From Bispira polyomma (Eukaryota), in contig OZ287752.1 of the NCBI GenBank assembly GCA_965649765.1, positions 19,964,001 to 20,028,000 on the forward strand: a stretch of DNA of 64,000 nt, read 5' to 3'. The translations under genes were made by a program, and so were the position numbers. The notes under the pieces were generated by a model. It searched no databases and was not told the origin of the DNA. It saw only the letters and a list, made by a program, of their open reading frames with translations. Of the stretch, positions 4,234 through 50,619 are shown piece by piece (positions within the stretch are counted from its first letter, which is position 1; the number at the start of each line of letters is the position of its first letter).

Positions 4234-4258
4234 AAACAGTAACATGAAACCTACACAG
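4234..4258 (+). CDS. Candidate upstream exon of the microexon gene (NSN-MKPTQ)
   Basis: ttatttcag|AAACAGTAACATGAAACCTACACAG|gtaaat. Good splice sites, ATG at 4244, ends in phase 0. Linkage to downstream exons is inferred. Confidence 0.35.
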
Positions 4259-7765: not shown

Positions 7766-7773
7766 CTTACCAA
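6595..7773 (-). pseudogene. Penelope RT/GIY-YIG ORF remnant with an in-frame TGA at 6838-6840
   Basis: Two ORF-track segments in the same frame, separated by a single stop within the GIY-YIG domain (QTKR*LMDRF). N-terminal RT motifs are missing. Confidence 0.9.
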
Positions 7774-11663: not shown

Positions 11664-11675
11664 GCAATAACACAG
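11664..11675 (+). CDS. Candidate 12-nt symmetric microexon (GNNT)
   Basis: tattgttcactag|GCAATAACACAG|gtatga. Ends in ACAG like most array exons and encodes an N-x-T sequon. Confidence 0.35.
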
Positions 11676-17173: not shown

Positions 17174-17206
17174 AGATGACGACGACCACGACTGAGTCCA
17201 CCACAG
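17174..17206 (+). CDS. Microexon 1, 33 nt, phase 1-1: (E)MTTTTTESTT
   Basis: cctgtgtttttcag|AGATGACGACGACCACGACTGAGTCCACCACAG|gtattt. Confidence 0.8.
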
Positions 17207-17407
17207 GTATTTAAGTGTTAATGGAGCTTTGATTTTGTAGCTATTTCAATTAAAGCTTACCCCTTCTACTCAGTAATGTCTGTGTATTTAACTCTCTGAG
17301 GTGTGTTGTCTGTAGCTTTTTAGTCTGGCTATATATTTGTGGCTTGAGTCTATCTATGTGTAACTGTGCTAATACTAATACTATTCTCCTATTTTATTAA
17401 TCGTTCC

Positions 17408-19562
17408 TTTAGCACCCCTAGTTTCCTCGCTGCCGCCACTGCCCGTGCCGCCGCCGCCACATGGTCTTTTTTGAATATCTCCGTCAATATTTTCTGCATC
17501 AAAATTATTAATGGAAATTATCTTAACCAGGAGTGGGAAATTTTTTTTTAAAATTCTTAGATTTGAACTTTGGCCTACTTAAATGTCAGGTGACCCTGGG
17601 AATGTAAAAGTGCTTTTCACTAGGTTTTCTCAACAAGTATTTGTCATAGTTCAATGAAATTTGGCATGTACCTTGGTAAGGCAATTTTCTAGATGGGAGA
17701 CGCTGTTGAGATTAATTGGATCATAATTGGCTGATTGCCGACCCATTGATTTTTCTTTGAAATGCCCAAAATCGGTACTTTTTTGCTGTCTCGGTAACTA
17801 TTGAGATTTCGGCTTTTTCTTGCTGTAAATTATTCATCTACTTTTGGATTTTATGTATTGTGTTATAATCTCATGTTTTTAAGTGTAATACCTTATGAGA
17901 AACCCAGTACTTCAAATGAGTATTTTGCTCTATTTTGCTCTGTCTTGCACTTTTATTAACTTTTCTTTTGAAGTACTTCTCATAGTTCCATGAAATTTGG
18001 CATGCATATTGCAAATACTAAAACAGACATGACTGAAAATTTTTAGATCAATCTGGTCATAATTGACTGATTGACAGGGTCAATCAATCCTACAAAATGG
18101 GATAAAAAAAAAGTGTTGATGGGGGTTGTTTCTAAAACTCGGAGCTCCATACGGAGCTCCGTCACGTAGGTAAAATCGCCTAAAATCGCCTAGATCTTGG
18201 GAGGTAGCTCCGTACGGAGGTAAAATCGCCCAAAATCGCCTAAATCTTGGGAGGTAGCTCTTAAATCGCCCAAATCTTGGGAGGTAGCTCTAAAATCGCC
18301 CAAATCTTGGGAGATAGCTTGAAAATTGCCTAAATTTTGAGAGGTAATTTATAAGGAATTAATTTCATAATTAATAATTTATTTTATAATTAATCTCATA
18401 ATTAATTTTATAATTAATGAATGTATTATTATATGCTTTGTGGATTATAATATACAGTCTAGGATTTAATTTTGTATTATGTATTTTTATATGTAGTATT
18501 ATATTTATATTTGTTCTTCATTCGATTTGGGAATTATATAATATACAGTATAGGAATTATTTTTTTTTTCATATTATTCTCCATATTTATTTAGTCTATA
18601 TTGTCCTAGAGCCATTTTAGAGCTACCTCCCAAGATTTAGGCGATTTTTAAGCTACCTCCCAAGATTTAGGCGATTTTCAAGCTACCTCCCAAGATTTAG
18701 GCAATTTTCAAGCTACCTCCGTGGATTCAGGCGATTTTAGGCGATTTTAGAGCCACCTCCCAAGATTTAGGCGATTTTAGGCGATTTTTACCTCCCTGTA
18801 CAAAGTGCATTAGGCGATTTTAGGCGATTTCTCCGTCACGGAGGCGATCGCCCCCGAGTTTTAGTATTAACCGTTGATGGGGGCTTTTTTCAGCGACTGG
18901 GGGTTTTATATATATTGAATTTTAGAATTTTTGAGTAAGTTTTTCAGAAAAGCCTCAATTTTTATTTATTTTTACCACTTCCAAAAATATGCGATCGTTA
19001 CTGATATACAATGATTTAAATTTTAAAAATGTCAAAGCTTCAGTGTTTTTTCAAAACGTCTGTTATCTCAGAAACGGTGCTAGATAAAGCGATTTCTAGC
19101 TCACTTTCGATCCACAGAAAAAGATTCTGTTTATATGTCAACTTTTTAAAAAATTTCTGATTTTGGTGGCCATCTTGAATTTCTGCGTCTTTTTTGGAAA
19201 CGTCTGTTATCTCGGAAACGGTGCTAGCTAAAGCGATTTATAGCTCTTTTTCGACCCACAGGGCAAATTCTGTTTATATGTTAACTTTTAAAAGAATTTC
19301 GGATTTTGGCGGCCAAACGGAAACGGTGCTAGATAGAGTGATTTGGAGCTCATTTTCGATCCACAGGGCAGAGCGTCTTTTTCGAAAACAACCATTATCT
19401 CGGAAACACTGCTAGATACAGCAATTTTGAGCTCATTTTCAACCTCATTTTTAATCCACCGGCCTTATTCTGCTTATGTCAACTTTTCAAAAAAATTTAC
19501 CTTCATTATTATTTCAACTTCAGGGACGCTTCGTTTTTGTTATCCAAAACTGTTTTCTAGTT
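17408..19562 (+). mobile_element. HINE-like element (different family) hosting a nested foldback MITE
   Basis: 5' (gcc)n microsatellite at ~17430-17460, internal tandem monomers containing tctcggaaacggtgctagata.agcgattt (19050-19440), 3' end ...gttttctagtt. Confidence 0.55.
18124..18872. mobile_element. Foldback/Mutator-like MITE with 9-bp TSD
   Basis: TSD gttgatggg at 18115-18123 and 18873-18881. TIRs ggttgtttctaaaactcgg / ccgagttttagtattaacc. Arms are tandem aaatcgcctaaatcttgggaggtagc repeats and their reverse complement, around an AT-rich spacer. Confidence 0.85.
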
Positions 19563-20075
19563 TCACTTCACATACTTTCCAATACTGCTGGTATTTTATT
19601 CCATTTTACTTCATTTTGGCTAATTTTACACAAATAGCCACTTTTCAATAGATTTTCTTGTTTTTAGCGTTGTGTAAACATGGATAGGTGATATATCCAG
19701 AAGTTTAAAAATATGTTTCAATGTGTATAAAATAACCAGGCTTAGCATAGAAGTTTCATTTATATTTGTATATAGCAAATTTCTTGATGAATATTTGTTA
19801 GGAAAACAATAAGAAACATCAATTGTACAATACAACATCATCCTATTTAAATCTCTGTTTTTTTAACTCAATTTCACCTTTTCAAATTTGTCAAATATCC
19901 CTTCTTTTTAATGATTTTTTTTTAAATGTTTCATCACATTTACCAAGGATTTTGGATAACAGAAGTTCTACTGTATTTAGTCAAAGTATGAGTAGAGCTT
20001 TACAAAGCTATATGCTATGTCAAATGTAAATTAAGTTAGATCTTTTTTGATCCTCAATGCCTGATGTGTCACTTA

Positions 20076-20758
20076 GCCTGCGCTTCCTTTCAGCATGTTT
20101 TTATCGGCCGATGTCGGCCGACGTCGGCCGATTTTTTCCCTCATTATACAATATTACCAAGTGCTTCCTTTCAGCAGATTTGCATCAGATCAGATTTGTT
20201 TTGCCAACAGTTTTTATATGTCAGGGAGCGAAAAAATCGGGAGGACTGTCCGATTTTGAGGCAAAAGTGGACAAAATAAACTGTCATAGGTATAGTTTTC
20301 ATCCAATAAATACTCAATATTCGTCGGATGTTAAAGTTGAAAATGGCATGAGAAAGCTTATTTTATTGTGATTACTGTGCTTTTTTCGAAACGGCTCAGA
20401 TATTTAAGCTTATAGAAGGGTACCCTATTTAACTTTCCCTTCTACAGTGAATAATATGTCACAGTGACGTTATAATGACGTCAGGTTTGTAGCTACGTCA
20501 CAGCTTATACATGAAGAAGTAAAAATGGATGCCCTTTTTTAACTGTATATATCTCAGTCGTTTCTAAACGATTTTTTGTGGAAAAAGAAGCACATTAACC
20601 ACAATAAAATAGGCTTTCTCCTGCCATTTTCACCTTCTACATCCCACAGATTTTAAGTATATATCTGATGAAAGGAAGCGCTACATCGGCCGACGTTGGA
20701 TCGGATCGGGCACCTTCAAATCGGCCGACGTCGGAATGTGCTGAAAGGAAGCGTAGAC
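20076..20758. mobile_element. MITE with ~20-bp TIRs (TA or TWA target)
   Basis: Left tta-gcctgcgcttcctttcagca, right tgctgaaaggaagcgtagac-taa. Internal tcggccgacgtcgg palindromes near both ends. Confidence 0.8.
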
Positions 20759-20944
20759 TAATTTTCTCCTTCAGGCTGTAAGAAAAATTACCTATTAGTA
20801 CTAATACCCCTGATGCTAACAAATCTATTACTTTCTGGCTAAAACATTGTGAGTTTTTCTTTCACACTGATTTTTATATTACAAAACTTTTGCTGAAAGT
20901 CGTCACCATTCATAGTGTATATGTTACAGTCAATCTGTGAAACC

Positions 20945-21053
20945 AGTCATTATGCGTAATGACTAAAACTTACTCATTTCATGTAATGCCTGAAACCACC
21001 AGTCATTACGCGTAATGACTAAAATTTCCAGTCATTACGCGTAATGACTGGAA
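20945..21053. repeat. Cluster of three 20-28-bp palindromes (agtcattacgcgtaatgact)
   Basis: Copies at 20945-20964 (one mismatch), 21001-21020 (perfect) and 21026-21053 (perfect 28-bp ttccagtcattacgcgtaatgactggaa). Confidence 0.85.
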
Positions 21054-23541
21054 TTATGGTAGACGGTTATTATACAGGAAGCACACATTGATGGTTGTTT
21101 ATTGACCAAGTTACTTTAAACTGGTATGTTTTGCAAAGTTTTGTATATAAAAACGTTGATTATGAGAAATTTGTGATCCTTTGTTCATGATATTTGTTCT
21201 TGTATTTGCAAAAATAATCTTTCAGAGATATTTGAAAAGTTAGGGATGGGCGTTTGCGCGAGCATAGGCGATATCGATATGTCACATGATTTGTTTTTAT
21301 AATGTCAGCTGTGTTTGGGTCACTAACTTGTGTCCTGGATGTTTATCTAATTGTTACAGAATATATGCCTGGATTTTTAAACATATGTGTCTCAGGGTTG
21401 AGAAAAACCCGGGTTTTATGAGTATTGCCTAGCCTTGCCCAAGATTATGTCTAAGTAGGTGATTAGGCACTTTGTGAGGTAATTTTTTTGTCTGGATTTA
21501 GATCTCAGGAAATACTGGCCACAGGAAGTTATATGATAGAAATACTCATTGAAAGTCCTAGTTGTACCTCATGATCTTTGACTTTTAGTTATGACCTTGA
21601 CCATTAAAATGTTCTCCAGATGATAATGATGAACCTTTTTAAATCAAATCTTAAGTGACTAGGAGAAATATCTCTACTTAAGCAGGATTTCCACTTAACA
21701 GGCTAGCTTTTAAAGGAATATTATCCGCTGTTTTGGGACTGTAACTTTTCTCCACAAATTAGGAATTGAATTAGCAGTGTTCTACCTAATAGGGTTTGAC
21801 TGTATATTGTAAAGTACTTGTCGCAGCAAGTTTGGTACAAATGCAATGCCACCTGTCATGTCATGATCTGATCTCATTCTGACAATTGAACTCGGAAGTA
21901 TGACCTTCTCACAGCAACTTTACCTTCAACAAACATTTGTTCAATGTTGTGGTCTGGCCTCATTTTCACCTTTTACCTTCAAAGATCTTGTCTACATTTG
22001 TTTCAATAACTGCTCTTCACAGGAAATTTACATATGTTCGGGGTGTAGAGGTGCAATATCATGCTTTTATCTTATTTCATTTTGTTAATGACCTTGACCT
22101 AACAACACTTGTTCCGTCTATATCTTATTAGCTATCATATTGGGTATAACCGAACAAAAATAGTTTTTATGTGAAACCGTCATAATATTTATTCATTGTG
22201 TAATTTGTATGTGTAATTATAAGACATTCTGTCTTTGTTGCTGTAGAATTTCTGGGTTAGTGTTCATGAAAAGGGAAACCTGTTGTTTTATCCGGTGCTC
22301 AGACTACAGGCTGTAGGGAGTGCAAAGAGAAAGGTTTAATTTCAATGTTTTTCTTCAGACTACTGCACTGATGTATTTGTCAACTGCATGTAGAATTGAT
22401 TAAAAGAAACTTTTTTGACAAATTATGGACATGTAAACTGCTATTTCAAGTCTCATAATATAGCTCTCCAGCAAATTATTATTTTTACAGACATGTTATA
22501 GGACATTATGAATCCATCAATCTCACATTTGTGCAGACCTTTTATAGGGCATTATATCAATCCATCAATCTGCCAGGTTTGAGTGCATAATGTATACTTA
22601 ATATATCAGATAATAACTAGCTACTACACATGTGCTTTAGATTGAGTGACCCATAAAAGTCACACAATCAGACTTCAATATCTCCTCCTAGGAGATTATG
22701 TTTCTTGTCCATGTTCGTCATTTTGTTTCTTTTTACAAGGAATAGTGTACGTTTCCATATCGTCAATTGGCGATGGCGATCAGCTGACGTTCGACAAGCA
22801 ATTGGCAATTTTTATGTGTCCATAGAGTTATTTAACAAAAATGGATCCTATATTTAAACCTAAATATTTTAGCCATTTCTCAACCCATTTTGATGCAATA
22901 AAAAGCACAATCAACCCAATAAAATAAGCTTTCTAACCATATTTTTGCAAAATTTGTAATTAATAAAGAATCGGCAATCAGCAAATTTTGCAGTCAGGAT
23001 CCGGATCTAGTGATTTTCTTTACTTTTTTATGGCCTTGGAAATGGTATGCACTCAGTGCCCTTAGTCTAGTTCATGTATGAAAATATATTACTTGAGTAA
23101 AGGACACCACATTCCCCTGATAAGTGTTACAATGTTTATGTATCAGTGACAGATTATAAGGACTAGATTCTAGATTCCTTAGGGTTTTGAGCCATTGAGG
23201 TTTTGTCCATAAACCTATAATGAAAAATCCTTTCAAGTAGAACTTGGTTTAGTCAATTTCCCTTGGATGTTTAGAAAATGCTGTAGTCCTACTAGGCCCT
23301 TTCTGTTTTAACATCAACCCTGTTAAGTAGAAATCCAGTGTTTCACCTGAATTCTTGAGGTTCTACTTAAAGGGGCTGGACTATCTATATGGGCTGCTAG
23401 TGTTCCCTTTTAAGGTTCTTAAAAACAAACAATTGTATATACTAATTTTTGTTGATGTACTATATTCTCTCCGTGGACAAATCTTTGATTTTATATTTGA
23501 ATAGAAGGACTAGTTCAAACTGTCCACTGTTTTTATTACAG

Positions 23542-23574
23542 AAACAACTGTCACTTCAGGGGTTACAAATACAG
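23542..23574 (+). CDS. Microexon 2, 33 nt, phase 1-1: (E)TTVTSGVTNT
   Basis: gtttttattacag|AAACAACTGTCACTTCAGGGGTTACAAATACAG|gtaaca. Confidence 0.8.
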
Positions 23575-24779
23575 GTAACAAATACTCTTAACACATATAT
23601 ACACAAATATGATATAATCATTTTCCAAAGAGATTTGTTTTTCTTCCCTCTTTCAGACTGGCAATATGTATATAGTGTACTGTGTCCCTCAAGATACAGA
23701 CTCTTGTCTCCAATGTACATGTATATCCTTGTGTGTATTAATACTGTATAAGTGGGAATTTTAGCTGGAAGAAAATTTCACTTAAATTTACAATTCTTCA
23801 AGAAATTTGCTGTATATAACTGCATATTCACTACAGTTGCAGATTAAAATACAAATTTTATTTTTACTTGGAATTAATTTTTACTACTTCAGGTCACCTA
23901 AACTTTAAAATAAGTAAAATTACTTCAGAGTGAAACTTTCCACTTGTGCAGCATGTTTAGGTGTATAGAAATATATATGATATATATAGTCAAGTTGTTT
24001 GCATGCATATTCTTAGGAAGACTTCTCACTATTCTAGACTTTTGCATGGCCTCTTAGCATAATATGAATAGTCATTTATTATGACACTATAAGGAATATT
24101 GACATGAAAATTAATGAATAAGCCCAGACAAACTATGAATATATGGTAAGTTGACCACGATTAAAAGGTGTTTCTACGCTTCAAACAGTGGTAATTTGCC
24201 TTATATCCAAGGTTTGGAATGGGTTATTACAATTGTAACATGACATACAGTCAAACCCCTTTACGTAGAACTCTGATAAGTGGAATTACATGCTAAGTAG
24301 AAGTTATTGAAAGGTTTTATGTTAAGTATAACAATTTTTTATGGTCCCTTCAGATACGACTATATTAAGGGTTCCACTATATTAAAATTAATACCTAAAT
24401 CTTTAAAAAAAAAAAGCAATTAAATGGTGTTACTGGAGCGTAAGAAAAAGTATGGAATAAACAGTCTCGAAAATTCAGATGTAGTCCTAGAATTTACCAT
24501 GTTCTTGAGCCTGAACCAGAATCGGCAACACAAGCATATCAGGTTAGAATCTGTAATATACAGTAGGATGGTTCAAATGCATTAAGTTTGTACTATATGT
24601 ACCTCTACTTAAGTAGGAGATACACTTAACAGGGTAGATTTTAAAAGAAAAGGCAATTGTGTTACATAAGTAATGCTCTTTAAGGGAGTTTGACAATACT
24701 AACTTTTCTCTACTGGATAATTATTCATAGGGTTCCCGTCCCCCAACCCCCCCGACCCTACCCCCCTCCTTCAGGACAT

Positions 24780-25390
24780 TTTATTTTGGTGGTATGGTGT
24801 CCCATTTGGGTTTCCGCTCAATTAAAGAAAAAGTATTGCGGCTATCTTTACCAAATGTAATACATGAGTTTATCATGGGTTATCATAATAGTTTGCTTGG
24901 GGCTGATTTTGGAGCCATTCCGAAAAAAACAAAAGGGCCTCCATTGATTTCAATGTAAATACTGTTTTTGCTCATTTAAAGGAAACATATTGCAGCTATC
25001 TTCACCAAATTTAAATCATGTTTTTTTCAAGGGAAAATGTTACTTGCGATTGATTTTGGGCCTGTTCTGAAAAACGAAATGTCTGCCGTTGACCTTAACA
25101 TGGAAACTGTTTCCGCTCATTTAAAGGAAAAGTATTGCAGCAATGTTTATCAAAGTCAATACATGGGTTTATTAAGGGTACAGCTCCATTGAGATTAATT
25201 TTGGGACTTGCCGAAAACAAAATGGCCGCTGTTGACATTATTGTGAAAGTGGTTTCCACCCATTTAAAGAAAACATATTAGAGCTATCGCCCCAAATTTA
25301 ATGCATGAGTATAGCTTGGGATCGATTATATTTCGTTTTTTTTTACATTGTCTAAAAGGGGGAAAGGCAAGCTAGGGGTTGGGGACATTT
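24780..25390 (+). repeat. Family B-related array element (about 4 monomers)
   Basis: Recurring tttccgctcatttaaaggaaaagtattgcagctatcttcaccaaattt...gattttggg...aaaatggccgc. Confidence 0.6.
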
Positions 25391-26079
25391 ACACACTGAT
25401 AATGTGCACATTTTTCCCATAGAAACGTATGCTAATTCTGATAGTCTGCATCAAAGTATGACCCGTTTCTGTATGGCCCCCTCTGAGTTGGCGCCATCTA
25501 GTTTGTTTTACAATGGTATTGTTTTCACCCGGGTCGTCCAAATAACGGAGCGGGTGAGCGATGACAGTCAAAGTTTGTTCAGACTACTTATCTCAGACAC
25601 CATGAGGTAGAATAAGTTCAAATATTGCACTAATATTCACTGGGGGATGTAGGTGTACAACATCATGGTGTGACCTTTGACCTTCAAGCAATCGGACCTT
25701 GACTTTGAACGTCTTGTCTTGAAAATCTTATTTTGCCTATTTGTCAAACACCTTGAGGCGGAGTCAGCTCATATTTGCTACAAATTTATGAGTTTAGGTA
25801 TGCAAGGTCATTGTCTGACCATATTTTTACATCTGACCTTGAAATAATGACCCCCAGCTCAAATAATCTTGTTTGGATTATATATTGGAAACTAATTTGA
25901 ATTCTGATTCTTTTATTCATCAGGGCATGTTTGTACATGTGCAAACTCATGAGCTGATCTTATTTTGCCCTTTGATCGCGGAATAATTACCTTGACCTGA
26001 TTTTTTTTCAGGACCAGTATTTCTTAGAGAGTAATTCCTAATCCCACATGTAGAATGAATTATGTAAACTTATTATTAA

Positions 26080-27265
26080 GTGTCCCGTAAGAGCGCTCGT
26101 TTGTATATAGGAGAAAAATTTACGTGTTTTTGGTCAGGCGACTTCTCTGATTGGTTGAAATTGGGCGGATTCTTTTCAAATTTGGCATATGTGTGCAGTA
26201 GCCCTGGGAAAATTTTTTCAATATGGCGTCATCATATTTCGACCAATCAGAGAAGTCACATGACCAAAAACACGTTTTTTAAAGGCGTGTGCTTGTCCGG
26301 AGGATAACTTACAATGCACTTTACCTATTCTCATGAAATTTGGCAAGTAGGTTTCTTATATAGATGTCTGGAAGTAGATAACTTTGGTAAGTCATCCGAT
26401 ACAAAATAGCCAATTTATTAACGATTAATTTAACGTTAAGAGTTTTCGAAACAAAGAAAATGAAAAATCCTTAACATCTCGGAAACGGTGCGAGATAGAG
26501 TGATTCCGGCTAAATTTTGGGCCCAGAAGGTATACGCAGTCATCTGCAACTTTTTAAAAATTTTGAAAAATTCAAAAATGCGTTTTCGGCTGAATTTTGG
26601 GCCCGCAGGGTATACGCAGTAATCTGGAACTTTTCCAAAATTTTTTATAAAATTCAATTTTTTTTATTGCAATTTTTTGGGTGATAACATTTTTTTAAAA
26701 AAATATTTTTTTTGGTCATAAAATTTTTTTTTTTTTTTTATTTTTTTTAGGATCATAAATTTTTTTTTTTTGGCAATACTTTTTGGAGTCATAAAATAAT
26801 TTTTTTTTGCAATATTTTTTGGGGTCATAAAATATATTTTTTTCGCAATATTTTTTGGGGTCAGAAAATTCTTTTGCAATATTTTTTGGGTTCATAAAAC
26901 TTTTTTTTGGCAATATTTTTTGGAGTCATAAAATTCTTTTTTTGGGGTCATAAAATTTTTTTATTGCAATATTTTTGTGGGAGTCATAAAATTTTTTTTT
27001 TGCAATATTTTTTGGGGTCATAAAATATTTTTTTTGCAATCCTTTTTGGACTCATACAATTTTTTTTTTTAATTTTTTTGGGTCATAAAATTTTTTTTTT
27101 GGCCATATTTTTTGGCGTCATGAAATATTTTTTTTTTTGCAATACTTTTTGGGGTCATATTTTTTCTTTAAATTTTTTTTGGGTAATAACATTTTTTTTT
27201 AAAAAAAAATCGCTCTCACCATTTTTGGCAGCCAACTTGAATTTCTGCGTTAAACACAAAAATGT
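26080..27265 (+). mobile_element. Array-bearing element with an internal T-rich ~31-33-bp minisatellite (26660-27200)
   Basis: Repeated ttttggggtcataaaa(t)nGCAATA units. Flanks share ctcggaaacggtgcgagatagag and ttggc.gcca.cttgaatttctgcg with 19050-19340. Confidence 0.6.
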
Positions 27266-28353
27266 GTTTATCAACCTATTCATATTTTATCTTCAACACT
27301 TGCTAACAATAATATTACAACAATAACACACAAAACATCCTTATTGCAGTCTTTCTCATTTAGTGTTTTAGCTTTGATCTATTATTTCAGAACCATCATT
27401 CATTTGAAACTCATTGATTTATTTTTCAGTTAAATTTATTTATATCTACAAAAGATAAGCTAGTTTGTCTGCCCTGATTTGTTCAGTTTTCTTGAACTAG
27501 ATATATAACCTTTGACTTTTTCCACTTGCATATTCTCAGGTTATTTTTTAATTGAGAAAAAAATCATATTTATTTTAATGGTTTGCATATAGATATATAT
27601 TTAATCAAAGATATTGTTAATCAATTTTATTTCTTGGAAAAGAAATTTTATGATTTCAGTAGCTTTTCTAAGAATAAATTCATAGTACCCAGGTAACTGT
27701 ATGAACTCATTGTTTCATTGTTAGTTTCAGTCTAGCATAAGCTATAATTAACTCAATACATTCAACCACCAAAAACCCTTACCACATTTAAATTTACAAT
27801 TTTTTTGACATATTAATAAAATAATGGTCTGCTCTATGATGAAATCCTATGATAAAATTAAAACAAAAATAATCAAGCCTGATCAGGCGATTTAATTTTT
27901 TTCCATGCGTAACACCACACATTCGGATTAAAAGACCTGTATATGCCAACTGAGTCATTGGCTTAGGTTAACTAACATTATAGTAACATAATATTAACAA
28001 TCTCAATAATGATCTAAAAGAAATTTAAAGACGCCACAGAGTATTAAATAATCTTCAGTGTCATTTATAGTCAATTTCTCTATTTTTTCCACAAAAAAAA
28101 TGGGTAAGCAGAAGTTATAGACTTGAATGTCTTGTTAAACATGGTTGCGCAAATCTGGGAAAATATGTGTTAAGCCGAGTACTAATCTGTTAATTCATAC
28201 AAGACAAAGAATCGGTTATTTTCAGTATCGTAGCACCCTACGATACACTTATCAGATATATATACATGTACATAATAGTTGTACTAGTAAATTTGCGAGT
28301 GGATATTATTACATCCAAATTCTAATAGAAGATTAAATTTAATTTTTCCCAAG

Positions 28354-28380
28354 CATCAATGGCGACTACAGAAGCTCCAG
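28354..28380 (+). CDS. Microexon 3, 27 nt, phase 1-1: (A)SMATTEAP
   Basis: aatttttcccaag|CATCAATGGCGACTACAGAAGCTCCAG|gtaaat. Confidence 0.75.
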
Positions 28381-28527
28381 GTAAATATTGTGTACTTTTT
28401 GTCACAGTTTTATCTGGATTCACACATTAACAATAACACTTATACCACATGATAGATAATGTAAATGTTATGAGGTATGATATGTGGTGATCACATCTCT
28501 GATATAAGTTTAAATGTATAATAAATA

Positions 28528-28690
28528 CAGTTTAACCCCTGCAGGTCAAGGTTCCAGGAGAAATACCTCTACTTGAGTAGGATTTTAACGTAACAAGATA
28601 CACTGTAAAAGAAAGGTCTTTGTGGGACTACATTTTTTCTCCACATAAAAGAGAAGTTGACTTAAGATAGTTCTAATTCAAGGAGTTTAA
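28528..28690. mobile_element. Small TA-flanked (Tc1/mariner/pogo-type) MITE whose right TIR seeds the adjacent minisatellite
   Basis: Left end ta-cagtttaacccctg. Internal cctctacttgagtagga..tttgtgggact..ttctccaca is shared with copies ending agggtttgactg-ta (~21660-21804). Other relatives start ta-cagtcaaacccct (24246) and lie at ~24600-24695. Confidence 0.6.
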
Positions 28691-29575
28691 CTCTAATTCA
28701 AGGAGTTTAACTCTAATTCAAGGAGTTTAACTTTAATTCAAGGAGTTTAACTCTAATTCAAGGAGTTTAACTTTAATTCAAGGAGTTTAACTCTAATTCA
28801 AGGAGTTTAACTCTAATTCAAGGAGTTTAACTTTAATTCAAGGAGTTTAACTCTAATTCAAGGAGTTTAACTTTAATTCAAGGAGTTTAACTCTAATTCA
28901 AGGAGTTTAACTCTAATTCAAGGAGTTTAACTCTAATTCAAGGAGTTTAACTTTAATTCAAGGAGTTTAACTCTAATTCAAGGAGTTTAACTTTAATTCA
29001 AGGAGTTTAACTCTAATTCAAGGAGTTTAACTCTAATTCAAGGAGTTTAACTTTAATTCAAGGAGTTTAACTCTAATTCAAGGAGTTTAACTCTAATTCA
29101 AGGAGTTTAACTTTAATTCAAGGAGTTTAACTCTAATTCAAGGAGTTTAACTGTAATTCAAGGAGTTTAACTCTAATTCAAGGAGTTTAACTTTAATTCA
29201 AGGAGTTTAACTCTAATTCAAGGAGTTTAACTTTAATTCAAGGAGTTTAACTCTAATTCAAGGAGTTTAACTTTAATTCAAGGAGTTTAACTCTAATTCA
29301 AGGAGTTTAACTGTAATTCAAGGAGTTTAACTCTAATTCAAGGAGTTTAACTTTAATTCAAGGAGTTTAACTCTAATTCAAGGAGTTTAACTTTAATTCA
29401 AGGAGTTTAACTCTAATTCAAGGAGTTTAACTCTAATTCAAGGAGTTTAACTCTAATTCAAGGAGTTTAACTTTAATTCAAGGAGTTTAACTTTAATTCA
29501 AGGAGTTTAACTTTAATTCAAGGAGTTTAACTCTAATTCAAGGAGTTTAACTCTAATTCAAGGAGTTTAACTTTA
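28671..29575. repeat. 20-bp minisatellite, about 45 head-to-tail units (ctBtaattcaaggagtttaa)
   Basis: Units are identical apart from one C/T/G position. No spacers. Confidence 0.98.
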
Positions 29576-29633
29576 CATGAATTCTGTAATGAGTGCTTCT
29601 CAGTTGTTAACCAAACATATTATTTCATTACAG

Positions 29634-29669
29634 CCTACACATCAACTATTGCTGGTATTGCTGATACAG
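29634..29669 (+). CDS. Microexon 4, 36 nt, phase 1-1: (A)YTSTIAGIADT
   Basis: tatttcattacag|CCTACACATCAACTATTGCTGGTATTGCTGATACAG|gtaacg. Confidence 0.78.
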
Positions 29670-31210
29670 GTAACGTCATTCTATGTTTAATGTCACTTTT
29701 GTTTCTTACAGGTATTCACTCTTCACTGTGTATCTTAAATACTGAAATTGCATGCTCAGTATATCACTCAGAGTGTGAGAAAATCTTGTACATTTTCAGT
29801 TTAGAAGCTAAATGTTCAAAAGTATCGCCCATATGTCCCTACATAATGCTATAACATATTCAGAAATTAAAAAAAAATTGTCATGACAAATTGTTTTTAG
29901 AGACTCACAAGTGAGCTTTTATCAGAATCAGATTTTGTGAAGAGTGTGGTTATATAAAGAAAAGACCCCCCAAAAAGAAGAAAATAAGACAGATACCTGT
30001 GCGAGCTGACTTTATAAATAATGACTTCTATAAAAAGCATGTGTTAAGAATACTCTGTGTAATATCTGAACACCTTGCGAAAGCTGAAGTTTAATAGAAG
30101 GTTCATAAAATCGAAGAGACAATTTATATCAAACAACAGGAAAATATAAATCTTTCAAAGTAGTTATGAGTTCATAAAATTGAATATTTGAATAGTAGAA
30201 GTTCAGCTATTAGAAGTTATACTAGTATTTCAAGCATACCTTACAGTATATCAGAATGAACAAACTGATTTAGTCAAATGTTTAGCCCCTGCTGTTAATC
30301 AGGCCTCTTCTGTTCATTATCATCTAGTCTTTAAATACATGTACCGATGGTAGGACTGCTATATAGGTGTTAATTAAAACTGGGTTGGCCTGAGTAAGCA
30401 GGTGACTATAACTAGTTTTAGTATAGCATAAGTTATAATTATTGTAAGATAGTCAACCTAGAATGGTCCTTACCACATTTAAATTTGCTTGTTTTGGCAT
30501 TTCAATAATATAGTGCTCTGATCTAGTATGGCTTAGGGTCATATAGAAAAGCTGTCTAGCATTGATAAGTCTTTTGAGCTTTTCTCTTTGTCACATAAAA
30601 ACTGGGGGCAATTATGTAATTCTGTACCATCTTATCAAAAACATCCTACAATAAACATATGTATGTAAACCTCTTAACATCATAATTAACACACGGTGGG
30701 ACTAGTTCTTAACTTGCTTGCCTAATACACTGCAGTTGGAATTATAGTAGACGGCATTCGCACAAATATTAAGCAAGTTATCAAATACTAAATGACTTAA
30801 TAATAAGAGTAGAGTAATAAATAATATTAAAGTAGGATTGAATATTTGGATATTAGAAGTTTAGATAGTAGAGGTTCTACTGAGAGTAATAAATGAGTTG
30901 TAATAACTTATATAAATGAAAGTGTGATGATGTCAAGCAATTATAGAAACTAAGGAAGAAATTTATCTATTAAAGAAGTGCATGTCACTATAATAATTAA
31001 TATATAAAATATTTTATAGAGATAACTAAAAAAGCTTAAATAGTCCACGTAGGATTTTTTTTTTAAATACTCAATCTTTATGTGTATATTTGCTCCATTC
31101 TTAAACACTCTTTCTAATATCTTTAAATATTCACAACTGTTCAACATGTATAACATATTTTATGTAAAAGAGAAAATTATTTTTATCTGGTTTTTTAATC
31201 TATTTAGTAG

Positions 31211-31237
31211 ATTCCATGACAACTGATAGTGTGTCAG
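31211..31237 (+). CDS. Microexon 5, 27 nt (30 with the NAGNAG acceptor), phase 1-1: (D)SMTTDSVS
   Basis: tatttagtag|ATTCCATGACAACTGATAGTGTGTCAG|gtaaat. Confidence 0.75.
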
Positions 31238-31539
31238 GTAAATAAAAACCCTTCATACAATGCACAGCTTTCTGCCAGAACACTAAATACTATTAATCAA
31301 TGTACTTCAATAATAAATGTGTCCCTTCCAGTTGTCTGCGTCAAGAGCAGTGCATTTGAACACTGACTTGATTAAACCTGTGTTTTTTTGCTCAGTGTTA
31401 AATGTCCTGATCTTCATGCCATATATAATTGCTATTTATTCATTTCTAGCTTTTAATGTTAACTATTTGGGCATCATTATGTTAAATCCTGGGTGCATCA
31501 GCCTATGGCACTTTCAATATAATAACACAATGGTCAAAG

Positions 31540-31648
31540 AAATCACCCCTATTCTAACTACCTCACAAACTTTCCCATATGAGAATGGGATTTGAACCCA
31601 CATTGGTGAGAAGCCAGTAATTATAGAGCCACTAGGCCACCGCAGGCG
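31540..31648 (-). mobile_element. SINE head fragment
   Basis: gggatttgaaccca...ccactaggccacc is the reverse complement of a tRNA-like A/B-box head. Confidence 0.45.
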
Positions 31649-31979
31649 CTCCTAATCACCAGTCACGAATCAGGCAGTTTTTGAATCATTATTTTACACA
31701 CAAATAAAGTGGTTAACAATTAGTTCTATGCTGTCTTCATCTCTTCTCATATTTTACTCAATCACTTAAATATGCCTGCCAAGTTTAAAGAATTAAAGAC
31801 AAAAACTGTTAATGGGTACATTTACATGTACTTGTAGAAATCTTATAGTGACGTAACAAAATGCTACTTGGTATAAACTGCGGTATGCGTTGCAATTATT
31901 GTTTTGAACGATAAAAGTTCTTGTGATTTGCAAACTTAAGATGATAATCCCATTTGTTTAAACTACATGTTTTTTACAG

Positions 31980-32012
31980 ACTTTACATCCACCACTAGTT
32001 TAACGGTTACAG
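31980..32012 (+). CDS. Microexon 6, 33 nt, phase 1-1: (D)FTSTTSLTVT
   Basis: gttttttacag|ACTTTACATCCACCACTAGTTTAACGGTTACAG|gtaaat. Confidence 0.8.
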
Positions 32013-32493
32013 GTAAATAAATACATATGTTTCAACACCTATCTCATGATTTTCAGTGCATGGTTCTGGTGTATAAGTTACACACAACAAATAATATTAT
32101 TTTTTAAAATCACATTTTTACTACCTCTTTTTTTGTAAAAGAAAAAGTAAAAATAAGTGTATAGAGTTAAAGTAAATACTACATGCAGGCTAATTTGTTA
32201 CTCCCAACAATTGCTAATGCAATCGAATGTGTTTGATTTTGTGCTTAAGCATTTTAAAAACTGGTAGTTCCATAGAAGAAGCATAGTATATGATCTAGTA
32301 GTTGCACAGTATATGTTCATGATCGCTAAAATGCATAGTTTGAACTATGAATTTAACTGAAGTCTATATATTTTATATGCAAGTTGTTTTAATTTTTTTT
32401 AGAATATCAAATATCAAGTGGACTTATTAAAGAAATTGCATGTAATATTTTTATCTTTGACAGAAGTTCTTTGTTTAAACCTGTGTTTTTCAG

Positions 32494-32526
32494 ACTCTGA
32501 TACTATGAGTCAAACTCTATCAACAG
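32494..32526 (+). CDS. Microexon 7, 33 nt, phase 1-1: (D)SDTMSQTLST
   Basis: cctgtgtttttcag|ACTCTGATACTATGAGTCAAACTCTATCAACAG|gtcact (weak donor). Confidence 0.72.
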
Positions 32527-32876
32527 GTCACTCAGAGAATGTCTACATATCAATTGGTATTTACATGTATAATCAAACCTTAATGAGAGACTATCTGTAT
32601 TAATTGAACAACCACCTGACCTTAAAATCATTTGAAAATATTCTCAGGCCTTTACTAATTGGACAGGTGAATCATTCATATAAACGTCACCACAAATGAG
32701 GCCTAAATATTAATAATCACAACATTTTAATGAAAAATTATTTAGATGTATTAAACGCCTCTTCAACTGATATTGTATAAAGCAATGTTTTGTTCTAAAA
32801 TAAGAAAGTACAGAAAATGCTAAACCTTATATATTATAATCTCTGTTAGAATACTGAACACAAAATGTTGTTTCAG

Positions 32877-32909
32877 AAGCCAACACTGCAGTAGAAACCT
32901 TGTCTACAG
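32877..32909 (+). CDS. Microexon 8, 33 nt, phase 1-1: (E)ANTAVETLST
   Basis: tgttgtttcag|AAGCCAACACTGCAGTAGAAACCTTGTCTACAG|gtaaac. Confidence 0.8.
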
Positions 32910-33039
32910 GTAAACTTTACCTACATTCATCAGCAGGGGAAACAGAATTTCAGTCTCTGATACCAAAACCAATAAACGTATTGGATCTGGTGCAACACCT
33001 ACCCTATTGAAAGATTTACCAACCAATATAAGATACTAG

Positions 33040-33241
33040 GAGATCCTCTTTAGATTTAGAAGTGACCTTAAAACCCACCTTTTCACCCTCACTTTCAAGT
33101 ACCCTCCATTAAGTCATCTTTCTCCTCCATGTTACCCACTGATCATCAATTTGCATTGGAAACAGACCACGATTTTAACAACTTTGTCAATGAAGTTGCC
33201 TAGCATCAATTAAGCGTGTTAAAAATCTATCATATCATATC
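33040..33241 (+). mobile_element. 3' tail relic of an L2/CR1-group LINE
   Basis: tttagaagtgaccttaaaacccaccttttc encodes FRSDLKTHLF. Ends aagcgtgttaaaaatc followed by (tatca)n. Confidence 0.5.
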
Positions 33242-33519
33242 AGGTGTGGTTTAAATCTTTGATAAGACTTATTTTTTGTTATTTATTGAACTGGTTGAGT
33301 TTGACTTTAAGTTATAAAAATACTATTATACCTAGTTTCAACATAAAAGATAAACCTAAAATTTCAGATATTTGACAACAGATGATATTTTTATATATTT
33401 TATACAACACAGATAATATGGACTTATAGTATGTGAGTTATAAAATGACTTAAATATTGGTAGCTTTTAATAGTCATGTAATATCATGAAATCCTTGATT
33501 GTTGAAACTTTTCTTTTAG

Positions 33520-33552
33520 AATCTGAAATAACAACTACCACTCAATCAACAG
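33520..33552 (+). CDS. Microexon 9, 33 nt, phase 1-1: (E)SEITTTTQST
   Basis: cttttcttttag|AATCTGAAATAACAACTACCACTCAATCAACAG|gtaact. Confidence 0.8.
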
Positions 33553-35552
33553 GTAACTTAGGTGTTATTTCCTTTTCAAATATGCACCTTCTATAGTATC
33601 ACATATTCTTCAAGCTTAACACATGTAACAACCTGACAGTGTGTGGTACCTGGGTAGGGTTATGGACCTTTTTTATTTTTAATATTTTTAGTGGATCACA
33701 TGGTTACAATACAAAACAAAAAGACAAGGACAATAATGAAAACAATAATGACAAGTTTTACTGAAATCTACAAACAAAATCACTGATAACAAAGATTAAT
33801 AGTAGGTTATCTCTATGCTATGTTTTATACCTTAATATATTTGACCTATATTATGATAGGTATAGATTGTCGTTCACTGTTAATATTGTACTTATTATTT
33901 TTACTTGTTAGATACGTATTTTACATTGAAAATAAAATTTTACATTAACAAGAACCTTTAGCAATATAATATTTTACCACAATTAACTGTTACACTAACT
34001 GACATTACCCTTCTTATTGTCCTCAGTTATTCTACCAACTTCTAGTTCCATAAACGTTATGACACAAGATATACATTTTAGTTTGTCATATATATTTCAC
34101 ACATAAGTAGTATACACATTTGAGTTTTATCCTAATGTTATATAATATGGCCTTCACTATCAATTTGTTACAACTCAACTATCTATCTAATGTTAAAATT
34201 TCTACCAAACACCTCATATAATAAAGCATGTAATCTTGGAACTGTATATTTATTTCAATCATATTAAGGAATTCCACTTTACAGAGTTCCAATTGATTCG
34301 GTTCGTATATCTATATATATAAAATATATATCAAATAAAAGTATGTAATGGATAAATACATTGGATAGGTCTACTTGTACTCAATATAGCTTTTCACTTA
34401 CTGGGGTTCCACTTATACATGACTGTCTGTATATTTCCATAATTAGAGGGTATATAACTACATAAATGTTATTTTATATTGGTATTTGTAATAGTAACTA
34501 TCACATTTATATATTTTTTTTAAAATATTCATAAATTATGTATAAAGATATGAGTTATATTATTTATATATATTCATATGTTTATCAGTTATAATGCTCT
34601 AAGAGTAGACCTTTAATTAAATATAACTAACCAATGCTTAATCATTTGATTAACAACGACACAGAGGAATAAACTATAGAAATGTCATGACTTCTTATAT
34701 CAAGACTCCTCAATACTAAAAAAGTTACTTATCTCTGTTTAAGTTCCTTTAAGTGTCTAATTGTTTTAATGCTTCAGTGTGACTCCCAGTGAGGTAAGGA
34801 TTTAACCCAACACATTTTCTCCCATCCATTTGCTTATGGACCTTCATTATTTCAGTAGGTACTAGATTTATTTTTACTGAGGTCAGACAGAGATAGCTGA
34901 GCAGAGATTTTTTCTGACAGTTTTTACCATTATTAAAAGATTGAGATTATGATGTCTTTTTTCACTTTTTTTCAGGTTTGGCAAAAAAGATATCATGATA
35001 GCATAGATCTTCAGTTGTGTTGAAATCATAGTATCTGCTATTATTTCTAAAATAATGTTTTATTGTTTTACATTTGATAAAATCAGTATGAATTGGCTGT
35101 TCATTCTTATTTTTTCGATGAATGACTGGCTTAGTAAGATGTGTAACTGCTATTCAGTGCCAGAAAACCATTGGAAAGGTCAATGTTTTGGCAGTAGTCG
35201 AGAGGTGGCTACGGCCATAGATATATATGCCAAGTATGTATTGTTATTGTTTCCCATGGCCAAAGGTAATACCTAGAGAGGGTTACCAGTCTCCTTGCAG
35301 TACAAAAAAGAGCATTCATGTTGCAAGTGACACTTGACTGGTTTTGTACAACAAGTTCCAATCAATAGAGTGACATTTTTAGGGAGAATCCTCCGTCAAT
35401 GAGATGTATCTAGATATTGCAAGAACATGAGTGCGATCTTACAGCACAATGATTTTTAGAAGATAATATTGCAGATTTTCTTCTTGTGACTAAGTTAATG
35501 TACTTGCTAAGTGGCTGGTTTATATATTTGGATCTCCTGAATGACATTTCAG

Positions 35553-35603
35553 ATGATGGCAATTCTAACGATGGTCAAGATGGTAATATGAATAATGATA
35601 ATG
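35553..35603 (+). CDS. Exon 10, 51 nt, phase 1-1: (D)DGNSNDGQDGNMNNDN
   Basis: acatttcag|ATGATGGC...GATAATG|gtgagt. Canonical donor and length a multiple of 3. Confidence 0.78.
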
Positions 35604-36713
35604 GTGAGTTATGAGCTCACAGTATGTCTCTCTCTATATATATATATCTACAGCAAAAGCTCATATATAGTGAACACCCATAGGACACAGTTGAAATTTG
35701 CACGATAAAATTGTGTTTATTATTCAGAGGTACTGTACAATCCTGTACTGGTTGCAAAATGGGACCGGGGAAATGTGTTCATTCTGGAGAGGTGTTTAAT
35801 TACTATTCTGTCATGTTCACTAACAAAGCTTTTACTGTATTGTGAGAGTTTACATTGACATACATAAAATCCTAACAATTCTTAAAGTTGTGTATAATGT
35901 CTGAAACAATAGGAGTTGTATCAATGAAAGATCTAAAACAACAGTCTTTATTTACCCCTTTCGACCCAGACATTATATCTGCCAGCCAAATCAGTTGACA
36001 CCCTCAAAATATTATGTTATTTTCCTTCAGTTCCTCGCAATAGTAAATTGTTGGTGTAGCAGACTTACCCCTGTAAACAATTCTACATTACCCCTGTAAA
36101 CAATTCTACATAAGGCCGTTATTAAATGCTGGAAGTAGCCTGTGGTGTGTGTTTCAGTAACTCCAGTTATGTCCAACCTATTACTAAATATTTCCTTCAG
36201 TTCCCCGCAATAGGTTTCTCTTGGGGTCAAAAGGGTTAGACGTCACTTTAAGGCAAATGATCTTTCATCACTACAACCTCTAGACCAGTAATCTGAACTA
36301 TATTCAAGCTCAAGTCAGGGCATAGGTGGATCCAGGATTTTGGGGAGGGAAAGGGGGGGGGGGGCCCTTTCCCAGAATGTATTGTGAACATAAATATTAT
36401 ATTTTGGTTGGTGGATATATGTTGCCACATAAAAAATTGGTGAGGGAGACACTCCCACTCCACCCTAGACTGAGTTATCTGTTAATCTATCACTTAACAT
36501 CCATGCTTTACTGATGTGCTAATGGCTGCACATCAATAAAAACTCGGTCGATTCGACGACAGATAACTCTGTCTAACCCCACCCACTGCTGGATCAGCCT
36601 ATGGAGTGGAGCGGTTTTTTAAAGTGAACCAGACACTTCTAATATTATTGTTATACTACCATGACACTGACTTGGGCATGAACCATGTGAAAATGTGGGC
36701 AAAATATAAACAG

Positions 36714-41060: not shown

Positions 41061-41234
41061 ATTGTGACTGTGACTGTGACTGTACCTGTGACTGTTGTAC
41101 CTATGCCTCTGGACTCTTCTATGGCCCTGGTATCAGCGTGCCACTCGGCCAAATGTTTACTCTGACTATTCTATGCCTAGTCTGGACTGGTGTGCTGTGT
41201 GCTACGTGGCAATGTGTCAAGAGATGTAGTAAGA
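41061..41234 (+). CDS. Exon 11, 174 nt, phase 1-1: Cys cluster plus TM1 (DCDCDCDCTCDCCTYASGLFYGPGISVPLGQMFTLTILCLVWTGVLCATWQCVKRCSK)
   Basis: ttatctgtag| ... |gtaagt. Open over 58 codons, GC-richer than the introns, with a hydrophobic stretch followed by basic residues. Confidence 0.85.
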
Positions 41235-41937: not shown

Positions 41938-42081
41938 AAAACAGGATGTTTCAGCTAAAGGTCCAGTCAGTGATACATTGCATAGTAATTACATTCTCGT
42001 TTTCCTGCTTAATCGCCATTGGTGTATGCTATGGGAGAAATCAGAATCAACACTGTGACTGTTGTAACTGTGACTGTAACT
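41938..42081 (+). CDS. Exon 12, 144 nt, phase 1-1: TM2 plus second Cys cluster (KNRMFQLKVQSVIHCIVITFSFSCLIAIGVCYGRNQNQHCDCCNCDCN)
   Basis: actttccag| ... |gtaagc. Lies within ORF-track ORF 41916-42098. Confidence 0.85.
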
Positions 42082-42759: not shown

Positions 42760-42867
42760 GTGAAGATAAGACACCGGCGTACATAGTGATAGTACCAACT
42801 CTCATTTTAACCGTCTACATCATTGGATTGATTCTGGTGATCCTATGTGTGCCGAAATACATCAAAG
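42760..42867 (+). CDS. Exon 13, 108 nt, phase 1-1: TM3 (CEDKTPAYIVIVPTLILTVYIIGLILVILCVPKYIK)
   Basis: gctttctag| ... AAAG|gttggt. The T|GT junction completes a Cys of the cluster. Strongly hydrophobic stretch of more than 20 aa. Confidence 0.85.
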
Positions 42868-45400: not shown

Positions 45401-45473
45401 AAGGGACAGATGAATCCAGTGGAGGTGCTGGAAACAGTGTTAGCAGGAGCAATAACGAAACTGGAAATTCCAG
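45401..45473 (+). CDS. Exon 14, 73 nt, phase 1 to 2: low-complexity tail (EGTDESSGGAGNSVSRSNNETGNS)
   Basis: T-rich tract then acaaag| ... TCCAG|gtaaag. In frame with exon 13. An alternative in-frame acceptor exists at 45410. Confidence 0.7.
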
Positions 45474-48219: not shown

Positions 48220-48296
48220 TAAATGTGGCAAATATTTTCTGAAGAAGTTAGAAGACGGTGAAAACGAACCAGAATTGTCATCACTGCAAAAATAAG
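48220..48296 (+). CDS. Candidate alternative terminal coding exon (SKCGKYFLKKLEDGENEPELSSLQK*)
   Basis: aacttgtag|T AAA TGT... TAA G|gtaatg. The phase-2 start fits exon 14. The polypyrimidine tract is weak. Confidence 0.4.
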
Positions 48297-50619
48297 GTAA
48301 TGTGTTACATTATTTTAGTTTTTATTGAAAAAATCTTTAAGCCATTTAATCTGTATTTTTCAACAATAAATCACACTTACATCGAAACTAAATCAAATTA
48401 AATGAAAAATTGGAAAACAAATGTGGTCTCCAATATATGGGGGAAACTAAAAAGCTGAAAAAAGGAATTTGTCCCCCAAAGAGTTTTACCAAAAATAACA
48501 ACGTGGACAAATTTGTCCCTCTAACTTTTACCAAAAGTTTCACCTTATTGACATTTTAGTGCTGTTTCTTCTTGTCTAACTAATAGCTTTGTTTTTCCAT
48601 TGGTTATATGGGGAGGTACATCACTCGTTGTTACAGACATGTTAAATTCAGTACACTAGTAAAGTTATTGAAGAATGCAAATAATATATTGATAACTTTT
48701 TTGCCATGGTTCTGAAAGACTAACATTAAAACTGTAGACATTGACAAATGTAGTATACCTGTATATAATTAGGTATGACTTTTCTGTGTTTATATGTTTC
48801 TAACACAATATTTACTTGCCTGCTTTAGTTATTAATTTTGCAATTATTAAGTAAATAAATGTATATACAAATTATGTGATTATCCAACTTTTGTGTGAAT
48901 TTGATTGGGTAGAGCTACAGATTGTGTGATCTATAGGAATTCTGTTGTTTAAGTACCGGTAGTAAAACTAAAATATAAACCTACAAAAAGAAAAGAGGAT
49001 TATGGGCTAAATTTCATATGATTACAAGGTCAAAGGTTAAACTAAGGTCAATTTTTTATAATGCACACTCACATGCATGAGTGTTTCTTTTGTCCTATGA
49101 ACCCTTTCAAGATAACGATCACAACAGAAATCTCAAAGGTCGAAATGTATGCAATTACCAACAAAAATTTTGTATCATTTGTTTAAAATCTAGTACTGGA
49201 ACATTGGACAAACTGACCAAACGTTATTCATCAGAATATAACAAAGATATATTTTTAAAGCTAAGATGTTTGATTATATTGATAAATAATAAAATTTAAC
49301 TGTATATGGCTAATGTAGTGCTGTAAAGTATGGTGTGTAATTGTTGGACATAGAACAATCTTTAACATGTAGTTTTTGTGTTAGCTGAGGTAGTTACAAC
49401 AAAAGTACAGAATTCACTTATGACAAAAGATTTTTTTTCTGGAAAAAGAAACTTATATACTGCACTCTAGAATCTGATTGAGTAGTGATTTACTTACAAA
49501 AAAATATAAATAAATAGCTTTCGGAAGGAGAATAATATCATATAAATATGAGCAATAACAGTCTTAATAGTAATAAATATTTAACTATTAATTCTGCACT
49601 ATTTGTATGTTTAACTCAGAGAAAGGACAAATAACTAGATTTGTAGATGTCCGTATGCTAAGGCTCAACCACATTAAAGATAAAATCTGCCGTTTTTTGA
49701 GCTCTGTCTCTTACTTAAAATGCAAGTTTCAATTTTATTGTAGTTGTATGTGTCACCAACAGAAGCAGTGAAACCAGTTTCTGTTTTAACACTTATAGTT
49801 ATACTTGCAGTGAAACTAATTTTTATTTATACACAGTTATACTTATCTATAAGTTATAAGTGAATTCTTCTTTTATTCCTCTTATTTGCACTGTATGTAT
49901 CAATGGACAAGTGTTTCTCTGTTATCATTTCAGCCCCAATGGTGCAAATGTAAATTAACAGAAATGAGATATACATCACACAACAGAGAACATATCTGAG
50001 GATTAACATAACAATATACAGCTGAGGACTGTAAATTTTAATAAAAGGAGCACCTGTTTTTAATTCTGTATTAATACGTTTGTGACAAGTTGATGTTTTT
50101 GAATTTGATATGATAAATTTTAATTAGTGCTCACAAAGTGGGAAACTTGGGAAACAATTATGCATTATAAAGTTTTGTACAATATAAATTTTTAGTTTTA
50201 GTTTATATATGCTTTGTGATGTGAAGGCAGTAATATACATTTTTAAACTTATTCTACTCAGCATATGTATTCAAAAATATATTTTCAAAACTATTTTTGT
50301 TTACAAGTTCTGCAATATTGTAATAGTTTAAAGTGATTTTTTTGGCATTTGAAAAAGCAATAAAGTTCACAGTCAAAACTTGACAAAAATATTCATAAGA
50401 TATCTTTTTTAAAAGTTTCCATAGGCTATATATTATATTCATGAGATATTTTTTTAAAAGTTTCCATATTCTATGTAAATATATTTTATTACTAAATGCT
50501 GTTTGTTGTTAAACTAATAATAATTTCAGATTTTTTCTGTTTTTTTTTACAAGTTTCCTCTTGTCCTAAATACAACGCCTTAATAAGGGTAAACGGTTCC
50601 ATATCATTTGACGTTTCAG

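Follow-up and report, generated by a model that had tools for sequence, protein, structure and literature searches.

Small symmetric exons for a Ser/Thr-rich stalk, followed by a three-helix membrane anchor, in an immunoglobulin exon cluster of Bispira polyomma

Closest in layout are fester and uncle fester (FF family) of Botryllus schlosseri, which combine a V-type immunoglobulin (Ig) domain with a sushi domain and have exons that can be skipped, shifting the head relative to the membrane, then three transmembrane (TM) exons and a short tail (PMC12582321, PMC3549757). Fester exons 8-10 encode the three TM helices (PMC3549757). In CD46 (MCP), short O-glycosylated Ser/Thr/Pro (STP) segments and tails are varied by splicing (PMC2118878). 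In Hydractinia, Alr1 and Alr6 lie in an 11.8-Mb cluster, and in each an Ig head is spliced to alternative TM-plus-tail exons (PMC9546547). Schistosome micro-exon genes (MEGs) hold most of their coding sequence (up to 75%) in small symmetric exons and encode a signal peptide (PMC4350168, PMC4015677). The locus described here is from Bispira polyomma. Window of 64,000 nucleotides (nt), N-free, at C5:19964001-20028000 of a 1.04-Gb genome; a further 80 kb upstream and 120 kb downstream were read, and positions outside the window are relative to its base 1. A run of microexons for a Ser/Thr-rich stalk is followed by three TM exons. Together these are read, with modest confidence, as the 3' part of an immunoglobulin superfamily gene with a skippable stalk and a role in recognition. 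The resemblance to fester is architectural.

The array within the window is composed of the following exons.

17174..17206, + strand: microexon 1, 33 nt, phase 1-1, Thr-rich; in-frame ATG as codon 2
23542..23574, + strand: microexon 2, 33 nt, phase 1-1
28354..28380, + strand: microexon 3, 27 nt, phase 1-1; weak AAG acceptor
29634..29669, + strand: microexon 4, 36 nt; extra in-frame acceptor at 29604, extra in-frame donor after 29654
31211..31237, + strand: microexon 5, 27 nt; tandem NAGNAG acceptor, giving 30 nt from 31208
31980..32012, + strand: microexon 6, 33 nt; the genome holds only two copies
32494..32526, + strand: microexon 7, 33 nt, weak donor; in-frame 63-nt form with the donor after 32556
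32877..32909, + strand: microexon 8, 33 nt
33520..33552, + strand: microexon 9, 33 nt; in-frame 42-nt form with the donor after 33561
35553..35603, + strand: exon 10, 51 nt, Asp/Asn/Gly-rich; in-frame 30-nt form with the donor after 35582

A sequence-only reading of the window had proposed these ten exons (33, 33, 27, 36, 27, 33, 33, 33, 33 and 51 nt; phase 1-1), and all are found where it placed them, with AG/GT bounds, lengths in multiples of 3, phase 1-1, no stop and a final G. The ACAG/gt ending that it reported recurs in seven of the nine short exons, which are Thr/Ser-rich as it held (50 of 96 residues Ser/Thr, 52%); exon 10 differs in composition from the nine. With each exon in phase 1-1 and supplying the G of the split codon, any subset is frame-safe, and on this point too the reading holds.

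Chance does not account for the array. A splice-score scan of 17-36 kb returned nine Thr/Ser-rich symmetric phase-1 candidates on the + strand, and one on the - strand; phases 0 and 2 yielded none. Over 300 dinucleotide shuffles the count was 0.10 ± 0.31 (maximum 2) versus nine observed. In a stricter scan of 264 kb, on both strands and in three phases, all matches were on the + strand, in phase 1, and members of the array or of its paralogue. The array begins outside the window. An eleventh member, a 33-nt Thr/Ser exon, lies at -5099 (5.1 kb before the window, + strand, phase 1), so that the microexons number 11, more than first given. Tandem repeats overlap none of the exons, and exons 7-10 are also clear of the dispersed repeats of their region; such repeats fill the introns. 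Rfam gave zero matches. Pairwise similarity between microexons is weak and non-significant after many tests, and gives no sign of mutual origin. The exons are very probably real.

Two repeats adjoin the array. A minisatellite at 28672-29572 (45 copies of a 20-nt unit, 96% matches) ends about 60 nt before microexon 4 and could affect its splicing. An AT-rich dispersed repeat of about 1 kb, with many copies across the genome (85-90% identical), occupies 33835-34838 between microexons 9 and 10.

The anchor and the tail are encoded downstream.

41061..41234, + strand: TM exon 1, phase 1-1; Cys-Asp repeat, then helix 1
41938..42081, + strand: TM exon 2, phase 1-1; short loop, helix 2, second Cys cluster
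42760..42867, + strand: TM exon 3, phase 1-1; helix 3
45401..45473, + strand: cytoplasmic tail exon, 73 nt, phase 1-2
49934..49958, + strand: start of the last exon's coding part, about 8 residues to the stop; frame matches that of the paralogue

Each TM exon holds a single 19-residue hydrophobic stretch (mean hydropathy 1.8-2.9). The exons at 45401 and 49934 together give a tail of about 35 residues, and a conserved 3' untranslated region (UTR) with AATAAA signals follows the last coding exon at 49934. Since the Cys clusters stand before helix 1 and after helix 2, both would be on the stalk's side of the membrane; the topology is predicted as three-pass, with both clusters outside and a short tail inside. 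Fester likewise has its three TM helices on separate exons, with a short tail behind them. The sequence-only reading's coding microexons for a Thr/Ser-rich extracellular stalk of a membrane protein are supported. Ser/Thr-rich chains of this type are expected to be O-glycosylated and extended, and the exons would encode a spacer of the O-glycosylation type, about 110-125 residues long, on a three-pass membrane protein.

Searches and folding were done on single exons, not on the joined spliced protein. No Pfam family matches the TM exons. A profile search with TM exon 1 against 1.84 billion proteins gave zero real matches; the sole HMMER match, P0002, is a translated tandem repeat and was dropped. 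An Atlas search with TM exon 1 found nothing, and word searches with TM exon 2 and with the IgV-like exon described below came back blank, a weak negative given their length limits. Exon by exon, no protein homologue of the three-TM product was found. The likeness to fester is one of architecture; the searches with TM exons 1 and 2 gave no sequence link. A candidate last coding exon at 48245-48296, with 16 residues to a stop immediately before its donor, was rejected: it has no counterpart in the paralogue and its phase does not fit, whereas exon 49934 suits both copies. It is possibly an alternative tail or a chance occurrence.

One further copy of the TM exons is located 81 kb downstream. 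The paralogue is a mosaic of two ages: the TM region was duplicated earlier, window 15.7-32.3 kb and 39-40 kb more recently. Three genomic sequencing runs, from at most two samples of one study, were aligned on 29610-35609; their independent contigs confirm the assembly there and the variant letters of the paralogue, which is thus not an assembly artefact. Among the listed joints of the three contig runs, no GT..AG skip occurs.

Microexons 3-6 are identical to their paralogue copies at 117 of 123 positions (95%), versus 592 of 699 (85%) in the flanks (Fisher p=0.001). Microexon 3 has two copies there, 27/27 and 23/27 identical, the older (23/27) with three synonymous changes and one replacement; the copy of microexon 4 is 32/36 identical, and those of microexons 5 and 6 are 27/27 and 31/33. 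The copy of microexon 1 is 27 nt long and re-framed, with its in-frame ATG kept. That of microexon 2 is 34 nt long, and its frame is not preserved. Exons 7-10 are missing. With four microexons kept, four without a counterpart and two decayed, stalk exons have been gained or lost between the copies and stalk length has changed. TM exon 1 is 64% identical, its Cys repeat being shorter by 24 nt, in frame; in the tail a 51-nt phase 1-1 exon replaces the 73-nt phase 1-2 one.

Decay of one or both three-TM copies into pseudogenes, or into unexpressed leftovers of segmental duplication within a fast-changing Ig cluster, is very unlikely. It would fit the mosaic duplication, the decayed paralogue exons 1 and 2, a TM-part exon identity close to intron identity, and the fact that both copies are known as genomic DNA. 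The window copy, however, has 15 intact exons without a stop; the TM frame is kept in both copies over a synonymous divergence (dS) of 0.39, with a nonsynonymous to synonymous ratio (dN/dS) of 0.62; and indels, many in the flanks, are in frame in the exons.

Two Ig exons precede the array on the same strand. The IgV-like exon, at -73812..-73495 (+ strand, phase 1), lies 91 kb before exon 1 and matches Pfam V-set at E=0.002. The Ig-like exon, at -26178..-25918 (phase 1), encodes 87 beta-rich residues; it has no Pfam match, and its predicted model bears a weak resemblance to the Ig sandwich (Z 6.6 to CD22). Two related terminal exons in tandem stand between the Ig-like exon and the array.

-12553 (L018:7447-7976), + strand: first terminal exon, phase 1
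-11462 (L018:8538-9376), + strand: second terminal exon, phase 1

Each encodes a Ser/Thr/Pro stalk, one helix, a Tyr-rich tail and a stop. The tails hold 16 and 21 Tyr; neither contains a canonical immunoreceptor tyrosine-based activation motif (ITAM), a point of contrast with Hydractinia Alr. An in-frame phase-1 donor lies within the second, after its first 234 nt. A single weak relative lies at C5:22.55 Mb. The eleventh microexon follows the stop codon of the second terminal exon by 5.5 kb, and between that terminal exon and exon 1 no convincing signal-peptide exon was found. All exons from the IgV-like one to exon 10 donate G in phase 1.

The upstream microexon needs a donor and no signal-peptide exon is near, so the nearest good phase-1 donors are those of the Ig gene. 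The array is probably joined to the Ig exons. The Ig gene would begin more than 74 kb upstream, with the IgV-like exon followed by the Ig-like one; then would come either of the two single-pass Tyr-tailed ends, or the 11 microexons leading to the three-TM anchor. A single Ig gene with three alternative 3' ends would be the simplest model.

A separate three-TM gene, driven by a promoter of its own and encoding an N-out, Ig-free mucin ectodomain, is conceivable but not probable; the Ig gene would then stop at the terminal exons, both of which are followed by polyA signals. Such a gene would start at the in-frame ATG of exon 17174, kept also by the paralogue copy, or at an overlooked short first exon. 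A short hydrophobic ATG-donor candidate 8.6 kb before the window would suit it, and two candidates with strong sites, 4234-4258 and 11618-11675, could serve as its 5' UTR exons. It leaves unexplained the 33-nt exon 5.1 kb before the window, of the same phase and class, which needs an upstream coding donor. A full signal peptide was not found for it, and a long ectodomain without one is less usual. As to the two candidates themselves, 4234-4258 is a 25-nt AG/GT segment with the array-type end ACAG/gtaaat; its length is not a multiple of 3 and it has a stop in phase 1, making it a candidate for a decayed array member or for a 5' UTR or start exon. The candidate at 11618-11675 is 58 nt long, its linking frame has a stop, and it includes an inner 12-nt phase 1-1 form from 11664.

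The surrounding sequence is rich in Ig exons. A single, intact C-type Ig exon (L006:4844-5161) lies 14.8 kb past the window end, and the first microexon of the paralogue follows it by about 840 nt; the two possibly form a chimeric gene by exon shuffling. This exon has 150 scored relatives genome-wide, nearly all on C5 and mostly at 10-27 Mb; many of them follow one another in tandem at 1-kb spacing and are 75-86% identical. About 140 related Ig exons are on C5. The IgV-like exon has 27 weaker relatives, also nearly all on C5. In another public assembly, a relative lies among Pfam Ig exons. A genome-wide pattern for microexons of the present kind matched 10 times, against 16 times in the control, with a single match on C5; arrays of exactly this kind are thus not common in the cluster. 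An initial, too strict pattern had zero matches.

Several observations weigh against the reading as a stalked Ig gene. The run search returned three runs, none of RNA, and the model is drawn from genomic sequence. Splicing to the Ig exons would span long introns of 47, 21 and 22 kb and would have to skip both terminal exons together with the polyA signals behind them. In the 80 kb upstream, no exon for a signal peptide of the Ig gene was found. Both Ig assignments fall under the curated cut-offs. For the Ig fold, Pfam gave V-set at E=0.002 and ICAM D2 / C1-set at E=0.002-0.009, all under those cut-offs, and antibody light-chain matches are at E ~0.2. Single-sequence models of the Ig exons are poor (predicted local distance difference test scores of 47 and 54), and Foldseek found no match for the IgV model. 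In microexons 3-6 dN/dS is about 1, from only 6 changes. The C-type Ig exon before the paralogue has intron flanks in common with a different Ig family and is possibly a stray or transposed fragment.

Under the single Ig gene favoured here, symmetric phase-1 exons would let the stalk change in length without a frameshift and so set the distance of the Ig head from the membrane, each exon of 9-12 residues adding one step between membrane and head. Some exons with weak sites would be skipped, giving a limited set of isoforms. The chance that some exons are skipped is put at about even; broad combinatorial skipping is improbable. The helix exons are symmetric too, so the symmetry may reflect only how the gene was built, and indicates possibility rather than use.

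The sequence-only reading, confined to the window, did not extend to the upstream Ig exons, the two seemingly alternative terminal anchors, the tandem paralogue or the Ig cluster. It had called the layout MEG-like. Symmetric exons no longer than 36 nt, in a series with long introns between, are indeed a feature of schistosome MEGs as well. In the strict sense the label fails: microexons make up only 288 of 861 coding nt (33%) in the window, and 22% with the upstream Ig exons, so the gene is not a MEG. Moreover, the product here is a three-pass membrane protein, and the signal peptide that schistosome MEGs carry has no convincing exon in the 80 kb upstream, with the 5' end of the gene possibly farther away. 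Neural microexons of the SRRM4/eMIC type have a UGC motif just upstream of the acceptor; in aligned flanks, read by eye, no common TGC was seen near the acceptors.

A large MEG-like repertoire, in which most of the 2^10 subsets would be made as stalk variants, is doubtful. All subsets are frame-safe, several splice sites are weak, several exons have additional in-frame sites, and in the paralogue, if it is functional, the frame-breaking exon 2 would need to be skipped; in fester, many combinations of this sort occur (PMC3549757). Symmetry, though, is also the outcome when a small phase-1 exon is simply duplicated, and all exons before the tail are phase 1-1, those of the helices included. The segments are similar and of low complexity, so subsets would differ mostly in length, and for this repertoire too the record is genomic only.

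Compared with fester, the locus shares predicted extracellular exons between the putative head and the membrane, clustered duplicated genes and neighbours with Tyr-bearing tails. Fester has a V-type Ig head; here an IgV-like exon lies in phase on the same strand and is probably linked. The second domain is Ig-like (weakly) instead of sushi, and 11 microexons of 27-51 nt take the place of 1-3 skipped exons. Fester proteins are allorecognition receptors; a recognition role of the present locus is a proposal. With CD46 it has in common short Ser/Thr-rich stalk segments (STP-B of CD46 is 15 aa) and alternative C-termini; CD46, however, crosses the membrane once, carries sushi domains and occurs as four main isoforms, against 11 stalk exons and a three-pass anchor here. 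With Hydractinia Alr it has in common a megabase cluster of divergent Ig genes, one domain per exon, a V-set domain without canonical cysteines, and alternative TM-plus-tail exons (Alr1, Alr6). Unlike it, Alr has a spacer with an Fn3-like fold, and Alr proteins are single-pass.

Remaining features of the window are traces of mobile elements. A 311-codon open reading frame at 6838-7773 (- strand) recalls, by eye only, the terminal part of a Penelope-like retroelement, with the thumb of the reverse transcriptase and the start of GIY-YIG. Decayed reverse-transcriptase fragments resembling long interspersed nuclear elements lie at 36600-37900 and 58270-58700, with a longer copy 31 kb before the window.

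The stalk is real, unusually long and built of microexons, in an undescribed three-pass protein of a large Ig cluster. It may be diversified by splicing; were the exons constitutive, it would be a mucin stalk of the ordinary sort, unusual in its number of exons. In its workings the gene would be closer to CD46 or fester than to a MEG, with an Ig head, optional stalk exons and three TM exons. Exons of 27-36 nt between kilobase introns are hard to predict, so annotation will miss such genes, and the Ig cluster of C5 (10-27 Mb) merits annotation of its own. Stalk length sets the reach of a receptor over the gap between cells, and is tuned by short-exon splicing in CD46 and fester. A narrow literature search found no receptor system of this sort described in the lineage. 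The gene may have a role in cell-cell or immune recognition. With an 11-exon stalk, a three-pass anchor, no homologue found and a place in a 17-Mb Ig cluster, it would be a concrete candidate for a receptor system directed at self/non-self or at pathogens. It is unlikely, in the fullest form of that proposal, that this is a recognition locus in which the fester design was reached independently, with an Ig head on either a Tyr-tailed end or a three-pass anchor with an 11-microexon stalk, combinatorial skipping, and an undescribed cluster of some 140 or more Ig exons.

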